Sequence record: OR805293.1
Length of the DNA stretch: 64,000 nucleotides
Strand: one strand, 5' to 3'
Shown here piece by piece: positions 14,539 to 25,176 of this stretch (the stretch's first letter is position 1; each line of letters opens with the position of its first letter). The notes beneath the pieces are model-generated. The model was not told the origin of the DNA. It made no database searches and saw only the letters and a list, made by a program, of their open reading frames with translations. Both the position numbers and the translations under genes were made by a program.

Positions 14539-14760
14539 CATATAAAAGTATGCGTATAATTTGCACATATAACGCAATAGCACAGCAACAAACAAAACGT
14601 AATAAAAAAATGTTGCAATAGCTTAAAAGTTTTAGTATAATAAGCACATAACAACGCAATACAGTTTACAAACAAAACGTAATAAAAAATGTTGCAATAG
14701 CTTAAAAGTTTTAGTATAATAAGCGTATAATGCAGCTTATATAACAAGTTAAAAACCCCT
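14539..14760. other. GA/TC-dinucleotide-free tract containing the tRNA promoters
   Basis: 222 nt with no GA and no TC (includes an internal duplication). Confidence 0.85.
14613..14720 (+). promoter_or_regulatory. tandem duplicated sigma70 promoters for the tRNA cluster
   Basis: Two copies of TTGCAA-tagcttaaaagttttag-TATAAT (14613-14641, 14692-14720), each with an upstream A-tract; period 79 bp. Confidence 0.85.
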
Positions 14761-14833
14761 CGGTAGCTCAGTTGGTTAGAGCGCGCGACTCATAATCGCT
14801 AGGTCACTGGTTCGAATCCAGTTCGAGGGACCA
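14757..14833 (+). tRNA. tRNA-Ile2 (CAT, lysidine type)
   Basis: Cloverleaf; anticodon arm GCGA-CT-CAT-AA-TCGC as in bacterial Ile2; CCA encoded. Confidence 0.85.
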
Positions 14834-14855
14834 ATTTTAAGATGTTGTGCTTTTA

Positions 14856-14940
14856 GCCCGAGTGGTGAAATTGGTAGACACAGGAGACTTAAAATCTCCC
14901 GCTTCGCAGCGTACCGGTTCGAGTCCGGTCTCGGGTACCA
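14856..14940 (+). tRNA. tRNA-Leu (TAA)
   Basis: Cloverleaf with long variable arm; CCA. Confidence 0.97.
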
Positions 14941-14990
14941 AACAAAAGATATAAATACTTAACAAGATAGGAAACTATTCTAAAATTAAA

Positions 14991-15066
14991 TGGCTAGTAG
15001 CTCAGTTGGTAGAGCAAGTGACTGTTAATCATTGGGTCGTAGGTTCGAGTCCTACCTAGCCAGCCA
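14991..15066 (+). tRNA. tRNA-Asn (GTT)
   Basis: Cloverleaf; TGGCTAG/CTAGCCA acceptor stem; CCA. Confidence 0.97.
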
Positions 15067-15092
15067 ATTACACTTTGTTGTATATTCAATAT

Positions 15093-15168
15093 GCCGTCTT
15101 AGCTCAGCTGGTAGAGCAACTGACTTGTAATCAGTAGGTCGTGAGTTCGAATCCCACAGTCGGCACCA
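15093..15168 (+). tRNA. tRNA-Thr (TGT)
   Basis: Cloverleaf; CCA. Confidence 0.96.
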
Positions 15169-15237
15169 ATTTTAAATAACATTTGTATCTAAAGAGATAC
15201 AATAGTCTAAATAAAATATTCATATAATGTTTCAAAC

Positions 15238-15314
15238 GGGACTTTAGCTCAGTTGGTTAGAGCGCGCGACTCATAATCGCTAGGTCACTGGTTCGAATCC
15301 AGTAAGTCCCACCA
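15238..15314 (+). tRNA. tRNA-Ile2 (CAT), second copy
   Basis: Body identical to 14757 copy; different acceptor stem GGGACTT/AAGTCCC; CCA. Confidence 0.85.
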
Positions 15315-15364
15315 ATTTTTATATACAAATCAAACTATACTTAAACTATATAATGAATGAATAT

Positions 15365-15449
15365 GCCCGGTTGGTGAAATCGGTAGACACAGGAGACTTA
15401 AAATCTCCCGACGAAAGTCGTGCCAGTTCGAGTCTGGCACCGGGCACCA
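15365..15449 (+). tRNA. tRNA-Leu (TAA), second copy
   Basis: Cloverleaf with long variable arm; CCA. Confidence 0.97.
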
Positions 15450-22474: not shown

Positions 22475-23294
22475 ATCTATCATTATTATGTAAATTATCT
22501 AGAGTAGTTAGAAATAGTACAATCGTTATTTCTATTGAATATTCTAATTTTTTTATTTCCATTTTTAATAAAATATATAGTTTAATAAGAATTGATATTG
22601 CTTCTAATTTAGTTACATGTTGCTTATCACCGACTGTTATAAACCTATTATCGTTTTGTATAGAAGAAAGAAATGAAAATAAATCTAAAAAAGATAATAA
22701 CACTAAACAAACTTAGTTGAACATTATAAGATTATATTTAGAAAACAAATATAACCCGAATGTCTCTAATTACATCATAACGTATTAATAGATATAATAT
22801 ATTAAGAATCTAAGCAATAAATATTTGCATATAAGAAGGATTCTAATATGTCATATAATCCAAATTTCAATACCTCTATTATAGGATTATCGTATAATTC
22901 TATAAAATTACATATAGTAGAACATGTACAAAAAGACATAAAAGGTAATACAGTTTACATTATATCATTTGTAAATGATTTTGGATTTATTTTTGCTAAA
23001 GTAAAAACTAAATATGATCCTAAAACTGTCTTATAATGCACGCCAAATATGCATAGAACCAAGTACCATATATACATGTATATGGGTCCGGGGAGAAAAG
23101 GGGATAGTTTTGTATAGACGTATGATTTATGATACAAAATCGATGAGTATAGGCAATTATGATTATACAACTTATATTTCGCATGAAATAGGGGGCTTAG
23201 GCTGGACCAGTTATAAGAATTTAAAAAAATGCTAGATTTCGTTGCTATAAAACAGTATACTAAACACTCAACACATTAACTAGCAGAGGTAAAC

Positions 23295-23444
23295 GTGGAT
23301 AATATCAAATCGTGCAAATGCGCACATGATTTCCAGGACAGTGTGTACGGCAAAGGTAATCGTGTGCATAACGTGTTTACTAAGGGATATCGTTGCACCG
23401 TTTGCGGTAAAGAAGTTATTACTTCTTCCACTGGCAAGAAGTAA
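23295..23444 (+). CDS. small zinc-binding protein (49 aa, not in ORF track)
   Basis: GAGGT RBS, GTG start; CKCAHDFQDSVYGKGNRVHN...RCTVCG; own promoter and terminator. Confidence 0.8.
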   Translation: MDNIKSCKCAHDFQDSVYGKGNRVHNVFTKGYRCTVCGKEVITSSTGKK

Positions 23445-23450
23445 AATATA

Positions 23451-23476
23451 AAAAAGGGCACACTGTGCCCTTTTTT
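23451..23476 (+). terminator. intrinsic terminator
   Basis: AAAAAGGGCAC-act-GTGCCCTTTTT. Confidence 0.85.
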
Positions 23477-23566
23477 AATAGTAAGAAACAAAGTAAGTCA
23501 TGCATTCAACTATCCATATTATACACTGTGCATTCTAATACACAGTGTATTGTTGCGAGTAATTAA

Positions 23567-23788
23567 ATGTCAACGACGCCTAGGGGAAAGAAAACTAAAA
23601 TAACATGCAATAATATAGAATGTAATAATGTATTCGAAGTAAGAATTGCCGATGTTAAAAGAGGTTGGGGACTATATTGTTCTAAGTCTTGTAAACAAAC
23701 TGCACAAGAGCAACAACGGCAAATGATAAAAAAATTATCCGGAGAACATTTGTTACCGAAGAATAAGCGAAGAAAAAAGTATTGGTAA
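23567..23788 (+). CDS. small zinc-finger protein
   Basis: CNNIEC ... RGWGLYCSKSC. Confidence 0.7.
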   Translation: MSTTPRGKKTKITCNNIECNNVFEVRIADVKRGWGLYCSKSCKQTAQEQQRQMIKKLSGEHLLPKNKRRKKYW

Positions 23789-23962
23789 GAGGTATAGTAT
23801 GAATTTAATACTAAACTATTCAATTTGTGCAAATACTACAGCTATAACTTTTTATATTTTCGGATTAAACATTAAAAAGGCATGGGTATACGTTACAAAG
23901 TCAGATAAGTATGGTAGGTATTTGTACGTATCTCAAGACGGATGTATGGGTGTCTTTCCTGA

Positions 23963-24259
23963 ATGGCAAATATAATTAAAATGAAACCGGTATTGTACTA
24001 TGTAGGTGATAATCCCAAAGGGGCATTTTTGTGCGAAATTTATGGCAAGGAATACCCATTTATCAATAATGAAACTAGATTTATTAAAGTTAATTCTATT
24101 TTTTATATATCTTTTATATCTGCTAAGTATACATATATAAAATTTCTAGTTAGATATAGATTTGTTACATGGAGGTTATACGACACTGATATTTATATTT
24201 CCTTTAGTAGAGCTATGACATCCGTTGAGCGGGAAATTAATAAAATAAGAGGAATTTAA
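23963..24259 (+). CDS. hypothetical protein
   Basis: ORF track. Confidence 0.55.
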   Translation: MANIIKMKPVLYYVGDNPKGAFLCEIYGKEYPFINNETRFIKVNSIFYISFISAKYTYIKFLVRYRFVTWRLYDTDIYISFSRAMTSVEREINKIRGI

Positions 24260-24395
24260 AAAATGCGTTATTTTGCACGTTTGCATTATGCTATACGCAA
24301 GTTTGCAATAACGTGCAAACGCATGTATAACGCTAATACAGCTAACAATACAGTGCATAAAAACATGTACAGCATACTAGCGTTACAACGCATAT
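24253..24395. other. GA/TC-free (also GG/CC-free) tract with promoter TTGCAA-17-TATAAC (24303-24331)
   Basis: 143 nt with no GA, TC, GG or CC. Confidence 0.85.
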
Positions 24396-24562
24396 CGTTG
24401 AACTATAAATGTATATATATCTGGAGCAATATGGTATTCTTGTCAGTCACTACTGATGATACCTTAACTACATATCATATATATAGAAAAAGTTTAAGAA
24501 CTGGTTTAGAATCGTGTAATTTTTCTTATGTACTTGGATTAGTTATGAAGGAAGGATATTAG
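24365..24562 (+). CDS. small hypothetical protein (ILxLQ family)
   Basis: MYSILALQRI start; the upstream ORF extension is the promoter tract. Confidence 0.5.
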   Translation: MYSILALQRISLNYKCIYIWSNMVFLSVTTDDTLTTYHIYRKSLRTGLESCNFSYVLGLVMKEGY

Positions 24563-24564
24563 GT

Positions 24565-25176
24565 TTGATTAAGTTAGTAAAACCCATTGCATATTATGGA
24601 CAGAAATTTGGTATCGCTGTTTCGGGCGGTATTGATTCTATGGTTGCATTGTCCTTCTTAAAGAAATATCCACAAAATAACTTCGATGTCTTTCATGTAA
24701 ACCACGGATCGGAGTATGATATCAAAGCAGAGCAATTTGTGAGAGATTATTGCAGCGACAATAAAATAAATTGCCATGTATACTGCATTAACACAAAAAA
24801 ACCAAAAGGTTGTAGTTGGGAAGAACATTGGCGAAACGAACGATATAAATTTCTTCACTCTCATGAATTAGAAATCATGACTGCACATACACTAGACGAC
24901 AACGTAGAGACGTGGTTGTTTTATAGTATGCACGGTTCGCCTCGTATCATTCCGTATCGGAAAAAAAATGTCATCCGACCGTTTATGCTTACTACAAAAA
25001 ACGAATTTAAAAAATATGCGAAAAGTAATGGTGTACAATGGTTAGAAGATCCTAGTAACCGAGACACCAATTTTAATAGAAATCAAATTCGACATAATAT
25101 AATTCCTCAAGCACTTAAAGTAAATCCAGGATTGTTTAAAGTGATTGCAAAAAAAGTAAGAGAAGAGAATGAATAA
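24565..25176 (+). CDS. tilS: tRNA(Ile)-lysidine synthetase, N-terminal catalytic domain only
   Basis: PP-loop AVSGGIDS, HVNHG, RNERYKFL, TAHTLDDNVET, IRPFM, WLEDPSN, RNQIRHNIIP. Confidence 0.93.
   Translation: MIKLVKPIAYYGQKFGIAVSGGIDSMVALSFLKKYPQNNFDVFHVNHGSEYDIKAEQFVRDYCSDNKINCHVYCINTKKPKGCSWEEHWRNERYKFLHSHELEIMTAHTLDDNVETWLFYSMHGSPRIIPYRKKNVIRPFMLTTKNEFKKYAKSNGVQWLEDPSNRDTNFNRNQIRHNIIPQALKVNPGLFKVIAKKVREENE

Follow-up and report, generated by a model that had tools for sequence, protein, structure and literature searches.

How can a phage whose genes are rich in AUA codons be translated in a host that hardly uses this codon? The question is raised by the DNA analyzed here, a stretch of 64,000 nucleotides (the window) of sequence record OR805293.1, in which window position equals record position minus 124,000. 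A 4.3-kb tRNA region within it is 100% identical to Pseudomonas phage Deifobo (OR805293.1), and the same region shows 97.3-99.1% identity in PA5oct, MIJ3, Paride, Cassandra, Callisto, PAC2, 30-2 and 30-3. Deifobo is a PA5oct-like phage of the genus Wroclawvirus, which comprises ~287-kb jumbo phages infecting P. aeruginosa. The guanine-plus-cytosine (GC) content of the window is 32.8%, and that of the P. aeruginosa host is ~66-67% (PMC7318152; PMC12514573). AUA is the commonest isoleucine codon in the open reading frames (ORFs) of the window, amounting to 35 per 1000 codons in ORFs of at least 170 amino acids (aa), 46 in ORFs of at least 100 aa and 65 in annotated small coding sequences (CDSs), and UUA (23-43 per 1000) is a second very heavily used codon. 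In P. aeruginosa, AUA makes up 0.9 per 1000 codons and does not occur in highly expressed genes (PMC12514573).

We consider it probable that the phage meets this demand with an AUA supply line of its own, consisting of two tRNAIle2 genes and a gene, tilS, encoding a lysidine synthetase (TilS) that comprises the catalytic domain only. TilS adenylates C34 of its substrate tRNA and swaps the 2-oxo group for lysine, which yields lysidine. According to the proposed mechanism, the phage, whose commonest isoleucine codon is AUA, would encounter a host nearly without AUA, in which the one tRNAIle2 is in low demand and the comparatively slow TilS would be limiting in capacity. The phage would bring in two copies of a tRNA(CAU) with a tRNAIle2-type anticodon arm, next to two copies of tRNA-Leu(UAA), together with its own TilS, of which only the catalytic N-domain is present. 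Lysidine would be formed on both tRNAs and would switch them from AUG/Met to AUA/Ile, after which they would be charged by the isoleucyl-tRNA synthetase (IleRS) of the host. The phage TilS would read the anticodon arm only, leaving the acceptor stem free to differ. The P. aeruginosa enzyme is a type I TilS with a kobs/KM of 0.3 versus 5.0 for the E. coli enzyme, and is 17-fold less efficient (PMC12514573). The codon counts fit the proposal made in a preliminary description of this DNA that the module supplies AUA- and UUA-rich genes: the two duplicated tRNA species are exactly the presumed AUA and UUA readers, and all other phage tRNAs also read A/U-ending codons.

The single-domain TilS and its relatives

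The tilS ORF (Table 1) has a Shine-Dalgarno-like sequence, GGAAGGA, 5' of its TTG start. The encoded protein matches PF01171 (1.7e-36) over profile positions 2-182 of 182, and scores 131.4 bits against TIGR02432 (TilS_N, an equivalog domain), for which the cut-off is 93.6 bits; the next PP-loop families, TtuA and TtcA, reach at most 31 bits. It contains the PP-loop SGGIDS (residues 20-25) and the motifs HTLDDNVET, IRPF, EDPSN and RNQIRH, and aligns with the N-domains of the TilS structures 1WY5, 3A2K and 1NI5 along the motifs SGGxDS, HxxDDxxET, RP(F/L), EDxSN and RNxIR. The catalytic motifs and 25 subfamily-invariant residues are all kept. An AlphaFold model based on 45 homologues has a predicted local distance difference test score (pLDDT) of 95.3. 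When this model was compared with the TilS N-domains of A. aeolicus, E. coli and G. kaustophilus, Foldseek TMq values of 0.82 (2E21, A. aeolicus), 0.80 (1NI5) and 0.78 (3A2K) were obtained, and values of 0.65-0.75 for TtuA.

The phage protein, which aligns to residues 26-228 of the 317 residues of the A. aeolicus enzyme, stops where the linker to C-terminal domain 1 (CTD1) starts. No CTD1 was detected in it, Pfam giving PF01171 alone, and no CTD2, the full-length model NF007942 scoring 77.7 bits against a cut-off of 606. The claim in the preliminary description that the ORF at 24565 encodes a TilS with the N-terminal catalytic motifs and without C-terminal domains is therefore borne out. Taken together, these results support the view that the ORF encodes a genuine TilS catalytic domain. 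The possibility of a split enzyme was rejected: the ORFs flanking tilS (23963-26568) contain no CTD1-like domain and have no Pfam or PHROG match.

The records of PA5oct and MIJ3 list the gene as TilS. PHROGs has no TilS family, and the phage protein gives only weak PAPS-reductase/QueC matches there. The Deifobo record lists the tilS CDS, Deiofobo_0231, as hypothetical and places its start at 24640, so that the SGGIDS PP-loop is lost; the TTG at 24565 is backed as the start by the family alignment and by the PA5oct annotation. In two RNA-seq runs from 2020 on a closely related phage, assembled contigs extend over tilS with a word depth above that of the flanks, which is consistent with expression of the gene but is not proof of it.

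A word-indexed search yielded 746 relatives, and the best 120 of these 746 are nearly all ~195-225 aa long and 43-55% identical. In an exhaustive search, 150 cluster representatives passed E<=1e-30, and these too are with few exceptions 195-225 aa long, classical TilS proteins being far more distant. The phage TilS belongs to a distinct, mostly phage-borne subfamily of ~200-aa proteins, which is new in this analysis. Recent truncation of a bacterial type I gene was rejected as its origin, given that nearly all of the 150 nearest representatives are ~200 aa long and classical TilS is much more distant.

The twelve closest loci in a species-genome collection (38-46% identity) carry labels from nine phyla plus one archaeon, a spread typical of mis-binned phage DNA. 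Neighbours of short tilS genes include a head maturation protease, an endolysin and the phage family phrog_9582, and phage hallmark genes are present at several of the tRNA-linked loci described below. One locus, in a metagenome-assembled genome (MAG) of the Spechtbacterales (candidate phyla radiation, CPR), has a housekeeping context with aminoacyl-tRNA synthetase genes, MreB, a penicillin-binding protein and DnaX, and a second Spechtbacterales MAG has the gene too. This context indicates that the short form can probably be the cell's own TilS.

The two CAU tRNA genes

The tRNA cluster found by ARAGORN spans 14757-18956 and contains 12 genes, every one of which is on the + strand and was confirmed by the Rfam tRNA model. 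Their order is CAU, Leu-UAA, Asn-GUU, Thr-UGU, CAU, Leu-UAA, Arg-UCU, CAU, Pro-UGG, Gly-UCC, Ser-UGA and Ser-GCU. Three of the 12 have the anticodon CAT; the first two are named CAT1 and CAT2 (Table 1).

CAT1 and CAT2 are identical at 65 of 77 positions, and the 12 differences all fall within the 14 positions of the acceptor stem, where six of the seven pairs differ (P = 2.5e-12 for random placement). The two genes agree at positions 8-65, A73 and CCA, and GCGACTCATAATCGC is found in both, so that the earlier observation of two tRNAs identical but for unrelated acceptor stems holds. C5-G68 is the sole acceptor pair that they have in common. Over the first four pairs, one stem is the exact strand flip of the other (CCCU/AGGG versus GGGA/UCCC), and cloverleaf stability is kept (-24.2 versus -23.9 kcal/mol).

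A Leu-UAA gene follows each of the two CAU genes, which had been taken as a duplicated block. The arrangement stands, but the duplication can only be ancient: the Leu(UAA) copies are identical at only 67 of 85 positions, with compensated changes in three stems, and the CAU-to-Leu spacers, of 22 and 50 nucleotides (nt), cannot be aligned. Because any duplication of a CAU+Leu block must therefore be old, the identical CAU bodies need a separate explanation. The pattern suggests that the body was gene-converted or the acceptor stem exchanged, rather than that the two copies simply diverged. Across nine genomes (Deifobo and all eight relatives), CAT1 and CAT2 are both free of variable sites (P about 0.003 for each), in a region where 7.4% of non-tRNA columns and 0.4% of tRNA columns vary. 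We conclude from this invariance that selection maintains each acceptor version.

To assign the two tRNAs, labelled reference tRNA sequences from the supplement of PMC12514573 were compared by eye, and the counts given here were made manually. The anticodon arm of CAT1 and CAT2, CGCGA-CUCAUAA-UCGCU, has 16 of its 17 bases in common with that of E. coli tRNAIle2, GGCGA-CUCAUAA-UCGCU. Both have the anticodon loop C32 U33 C34 A35 U36 A37 A38 (CUCAUAA), whereas the host tRNAMet has U32. The 27.43 pair of CAT1 and CAT2 is a non-Watson-Crick C27xU43, and the other four stem pairs are as in E. coli tRNAIle2; a weak 27.43 pair with U43 is also present in tRNAIle2 of E. coli and P. aeruginosa (G.U) and of B. 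burgdorferi (C.U). The tRNAMet species of the host and of E. coli have a different anticodon stem, with C-G at 30-40. When CAT2 was compared with 5,426 complete E. coli genomes, an annotated tRNA-Ile gave the top match in every one, with 87-88% identity, and one such match is the prophage gene ileZ, beside a Q antiterminator and a tRNA-Arg. CAT2 has G3-C70 and CAT1 has C3-G70; G3/A3 or C70/U70, and with them G3-C70, are reported to be absent from all Met and fMet tRNAs (Silva et al., PMC1635315). The CAT1/CAT2 body shows 8 differences from E. coli Ile2 and 11 from E. coli Met. Both CAU tRNAs are best read as tRNAIle2, an assignment that rests on the anticodon arm and the context.

The E. coli TilS determinants are U33, C34, A37, G27.U43, C4-G69 and C5-G68 (PMC12069591). 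CAT1 and CAT2 retain the loop determinants, U43 and C5-G68, and both lack C4-G69, which is replaced by U-A in CAT1 and A-U in CAT2. The preliminary description had noted this lack correctly and had overlooked the C5-G68 pair kept by both. The host tRNAIle2 has the acceptor sequence GGGCCUA, with G3-C70, C4-G69 and C5-G68; CAT2 has pairs 1-3 and 5 in common with it, and CAT1 pair 5 only. On these grounds, rejection by the host TilS is more plausible for CAT1 than for CAT2. That the phage TilS ignores the acceptor stem is plausible in view of the diverse acceptor stems of other tilS-linked tRNAs and of published results on CTD2 removal, both described below.

The third CAU tRNA, at 17364-17440, had escaped the preliminary description, in which the module contained the only two CAT tRNAs considered; for those two the tRNAIle2 reading remains the best one. 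Bacterial initiator criteria are a C1xA72 mismatch, three G-C pairs above the anticodon loop and A11-U24 (PMC1635315). In the third tRNA the C1xA72 mismatch is present, G30-C40 and G31-C39 are the only G-C pairs above the anticodon loop, 29-41 is A-U, and 11-24 is G-C. Its sequence is that of a divergent, initiator-like tRNA. All GenBank records of the genus label all three CAU tRNAs as tRNA-Met, the labelling that had been predicted for CAT1 and CAT2.

Linkage of short tilS genes to tRNA(CAU) genes extends these observations to other genomes, among them many phage contigs, and is common in uncultured phages. Within ~1 kb of short tilS, a tRNA(CAU) gene was found in 12 of the 38 loci fetched, mostly less than 100 nt downstream (in our numbering, loci L003, L004, L037 with two copies, L040, L041, L042, L044, L045, L047, L048, L028 and L033). 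The 15 tilS-associated CAU tRNAs, including CAT1 and CAT2, have in common U8, A9, the D stem, G30-C40 and C32-A37. The acceptor stems of these tRNAs vary widely, with C-G, A-U, U-A or G-C at 4:69 (C-G in 7, A-U in 2 and G-C in 4 of the 13 tRNAs from other loci). A C1-G72 start, as in CAT1, also occurs in two other partner tRNAs, those of L042 and L048, directly beside short tilS. CAT2 and 12-13 of the 13 other partner tRNAs have G2 and a base other than C at position 3. The strongest indirect support for an action of the short enzyme on CAU tRNAs, and for an acceptor-stem identity that is not fixed for this enzyme, comes from the recurrent linkage. A 635-kb huge-phage genome (LR745206) and Ralstonia phage RsoM2USA encode TilS homologues with no CAU tRNA within 6 kb; linkage is therefore frequent, not universal.

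Two of the linked loci are described here in their own right. At L003:10001-10891 (GCA_002581825.1, a 428-kb contig), the gene of a 253-aa short-TilS homologue precedes, by 53 nt, a CAU tRNA that is near CAT2, its acceptor starting with GGGAC and its anticodon arm being AGCGA-CUCAUAA-UCGCU. The neighbours (release-factor fragments, MYG1, HNH and a DNA methylase) give this locus the look of a giant virus or another large mobile element. At L037:3001-3874 (a Ca. Spechtbacterales MAG), short tilS is followed by two CAU tRNAs and then by six more tRNA genes. The CAU pair of L037 has acceptor stems and D arms in common and differs in the anticodon and T stems, the reverse of the phage pair.

Alternative readings of the tRNAs and the enzyme

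Several observations weigh against an AUA supply line. First, tilS lies 9.3 kb away from the CAU tRNAs. Second, at least one C-terminal domain is treated as part of TilS substrate recognition (PMC11947777), and an N-domain-only TilS could be weak or dependent on a partner. Third, outside the anticodon stem the body of CAT1 and CAT2 has 15 differences from host tRNAIle2 and 16 from host tRNAMet, a comparison that does not discriminate, and in the D and T loops they are the same as E. coli tRNAMet. Fourth, CAT1 has U4-A69, like host tRNAMet, and C-G at 2:71 and 3:70, unlike all 13 partner tRNAs from other loci. Finally, in 22 of 24 IMG/VR short-tilS loci no tRNA was found within the flank. The earlier term "self-contained" was too strong, given the distance of tilS from the tRNAs and the need for the host to provide IleRS, formation of N6-threonylcarbamoyladenosine at position 37 (t6A37) and processing.

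CAT1 might, in addition, form a private channel that depends on the phage enzyme, is invisible to host acceptor readers (type I TilS, methionyl-tRNA synthetase, tRNA nucleases or modifiers) and thereby withstands countermeasures of the host. We regard this as a doubtful, although compatible, added layer. The difference in six of seven acceptor pairs combined with identity at the 63 other positions, the invariance of each acceptor version in the nine genomes and the exact strand flips of the first four pairs argue for it, as does the lack in CAT1 of the G3-C70 and C4-G69 pairs of host tRNAIle2. In addition, B. cenocepacia TilS without CTD2 has lower activity and no longer discriminates at 3:70, while tRNAMet is still rejected (PMC11947777). 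However, this analysis turned up no defence system and no nuclease that targets the acceptor stem of tRNAIle2, and the pattern could arise just as well if the bodies of two old paralogues had undergone gene conversion. We hold it to be just as unlikely that single-domain TilS constitutes a phage-spread third class that reads the anticodon arm alone, in which a host-like CAT2 and a strand-flipped CAT1 would provide a private AUA channel against host acceptor-reading factors.

Less probable still is a division of labour in which CAT2 alone is tRNAIle2 and CAT1 is an elongator tRNAMet, the two forming the classical CAU trio together with the tRNA at 17364. The phage has otherwise no elongator tRNAMet, C3-G70 and U4-A69 are common to CAT1 and P. 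aeruginosa tRNAMet, and among the 15 tilS-associated CAU tRNAs only CAT1 has C2 plus C3. Nevertheless, the anticodon arm of CAT1 is that of CAT2, and an enzyme without acceptor-reading domains should modify both; C5-G68 is Ile2-like and not Met-like, and the CAU tRNAs adjoining short tilS in L042 and L048 also have C1-G72. Moreover, duplication of the CAU and Leu-UAA tRNAs fits two codons of very high use, whereas AUG needs no supplement. C3-G70 was rejected as proof that CAT1 is tRNAMet, as the same pair is present in genuine E. coli tRNAIle2 and in prophage ileZ.

It is highly improbable that the TilS-like protein has no part in maturing the phage tRNAs and instead supports host viability (MIJ3 authors), disturbs translation by modifying host tRNAs, or is an inactive or retargeted PP-loop ATPase: its experimental function was left open (PMC6892783), it is encoded far from the tRNAs and the tRNA-recognition domains of known TilS enzymes are missing from it, but it keeps every catalytic motif and subfamily-invariant residue, exceeds the TilS-specific equivalog-domain cut-off and has homologues directly beside CAU tRNA genes at many loci, and the Spechtbacterales context suggests that the short form can be a housekeeping TilS.

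Known systems and neighbouring features

Phage tRNAIle2 genes are classical, and the phage tilS gene itself is already known. T4 reportedly encodes a tRNAIle, said to be an example of a phage tRNAIle2 matured by the host TilS. A tRNA(CAU) of a T4-like vibriophage carries lysidine at position 34 (k2C34; summarised in PMC13191261), and the lambdoid/Stx prophages contain ileZ-argN-argO; among E. coli sequences, CAT2 comes closest to a prophage tRNA-Ile of this kind, which lies downstream of the Q antiterminator. In these systems, as is proposed here, a CAU tRNA turned AUA reader serves the codon usage of the phage. Such phages depend on the host enzyme, whereas Deifobo encodes its own TilS and two tRNA copies with unrelated acceptors, neither of which has C4-G69.

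Only two types of TilS appear in the recent papers on the enzyme, type I (an N-terminal domain, CTD1 and CTD2) and type II (the N-terminal domain and CTD1) (PMC11947777, PMC12514573). Type II enzymes (Aquifex aeolicus, 1WY5/2E21/2E89; M. smegmatis and H. pylori) give the best sequence and fold match to the phage protein (E 3.7e-19, TM 0.82) and likewise lack the acceptor-binding CTD2. They retain CTD1, however, and are ~310-350 aa long, whereas CTD1 is missing from the phage TilS. Ralstonia phage RsoM2USA (349 aa) and giant viruses (~700 aa) also encode lysidine synthetase homologues, which are longer and multi-domain. The tilS gene of MIJ3/PA5oct was reported in 2019 with its role left open (PMC6892783). 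This is the same gene (EST35_0433), 99.5% identical, and the MIJ3 paper described it as an unusual host-like gene, neither linking it to the three "tRNA-Met" genes nor recognising it as single-domain (PMC6892783). Single-domain entries of 209-269 aa are automatically named TilS in UniProt and AFDB, and our literature search found no paper on the single-domain TilS architecture or its tRNA linkage. New here are the distinct, mostly phage-borne short-TilS subfamily, its frequent tRNA(CAU) linkage and the diverse acceptor stems of the partner tRNAs.

Current TilS papers pose as an open question how tRNAIle2 is told from tRNAMet without reading of the acceptor stem. A natural, apparently functional TilS made up of the catalytic domain only would be a minimal system for this question, available in cultured phages of a laboratory host, with its presumed substrates encoded alongside. 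The module would explain three "tRNA-Met" annotations and a gene listed as "hypothetical" or of "unknown role" in a phage group that serves as a jumbo-phage model and therapy candidate. It would also show a route by which a 33% GC phage is translated in a 66% GC host that hardly uses AUA. If this is true, a small enzyme that makes AUA readers from CAU tRNAs with arbitrary acceptors would be useful for codon reassignment.

Table 1. Features of the tilS and tRNA regions, in window coordinates (Rfam threshold, 29 bits).
Feature	Coordinates	Strand	Details	Support
Two overlapping sigma-70-like promoter matches	14692..14731	+	just 5' of the six-tRNA block	consensus match only
tRNA(CAU) copy 1 (CAT1)	14757..14833	+	tRNAIle2-type body; acceptor CCCUCGG/UCGAGGG (C1-G72, C2-G71, C3-G70, U4-A69, C5-G68, G6-C67, G7.U66); A73; encoded CCA	ARAGORN; Rfam 66.3 bits; cloverleaf -24.2 kcal/mol
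tRNA-Leu(UAA) copy 1	14856..14940	+		ARAGORN, Rfam
tRNA-Asn(GUU) and tRNA-Thr(UGU)	14991..15168	+	separate the two CAU/Leu pairs	ARAGORN, Rfam
tRNA(CAU) copy 2 (CAT2)	15238..15314	+	body as CAT1; acceptor GGGACUU/AAGUCCC (G1-C72, G2-C71, G3-C70, A4-U69, C5-G68, U6-A67, U7-A66); A73; encoded CCA	ARAGORN; Rfam 72.6 bits; cloverleaf -23.9 kcal/mol
tRNA-Leu(UAA) copy 2	15365..15449	+		ARAGORN, Rfam
Terminator-like 13-bp hairpin and T-run	15459..15488	+	immediately 3' of tRNA-Leu copy 2	
Third tRNA(CAU), initiator-like	17364..17440	+	context rather than part of the AUA module	ARAGORN; Rfam 56.9 bits
tilS, single-domain TilS	24565..25176	+	203 aa; TTG start 2 nt past the preceding stop	Pfam, NCBIfam and PDB matches, AlphaFold

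The promoter matches upstream of the six-tRNA block are weak, and the number of such matches in the region is no higher than in shuffles. Within the cluster, tRNA-Asn (14991-15066) is the only tRNA that is notably variable in the genus, with three variable sites; the Deifobo gene has G28, which gives a G.U pair in the anticodon stem.

A scan of the remaining + strand ORFs of at least 170 aa plus three shorter ones revealed no further tRNA-related genes in the window, its sole matches being to a cell-wall hydrolase, an AAA ATPase and an M23-like peptidase. A 161-aa ORF at 13768-14253 has a sub-threshold match to PF07737, the anthrax lethal factor domain (E 5e-4, 20 bits versus a cut-off of 27.4), which is probably due to no more than chance or a small fold of the metalloprotease-like kind. 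The interval that separates the tRNA cluster from tilS contains a GDSL-lipase-like ORF (21499-22137) and a DksA/TraR zinc-finger ORF (22145-22474). The element at 23295-23477, which is absent from the four non-coding RNAs listed for PA5oct, contains a 49-aa Cys-rich ORF (CxC...CxxC), downstream of which lies a terminator with a strong hairpin and a T-run. Its contig word depth is ~240,000, compared with 600-2,000 nearby (RNA run X17), which suggests a small and very abundant transcript.

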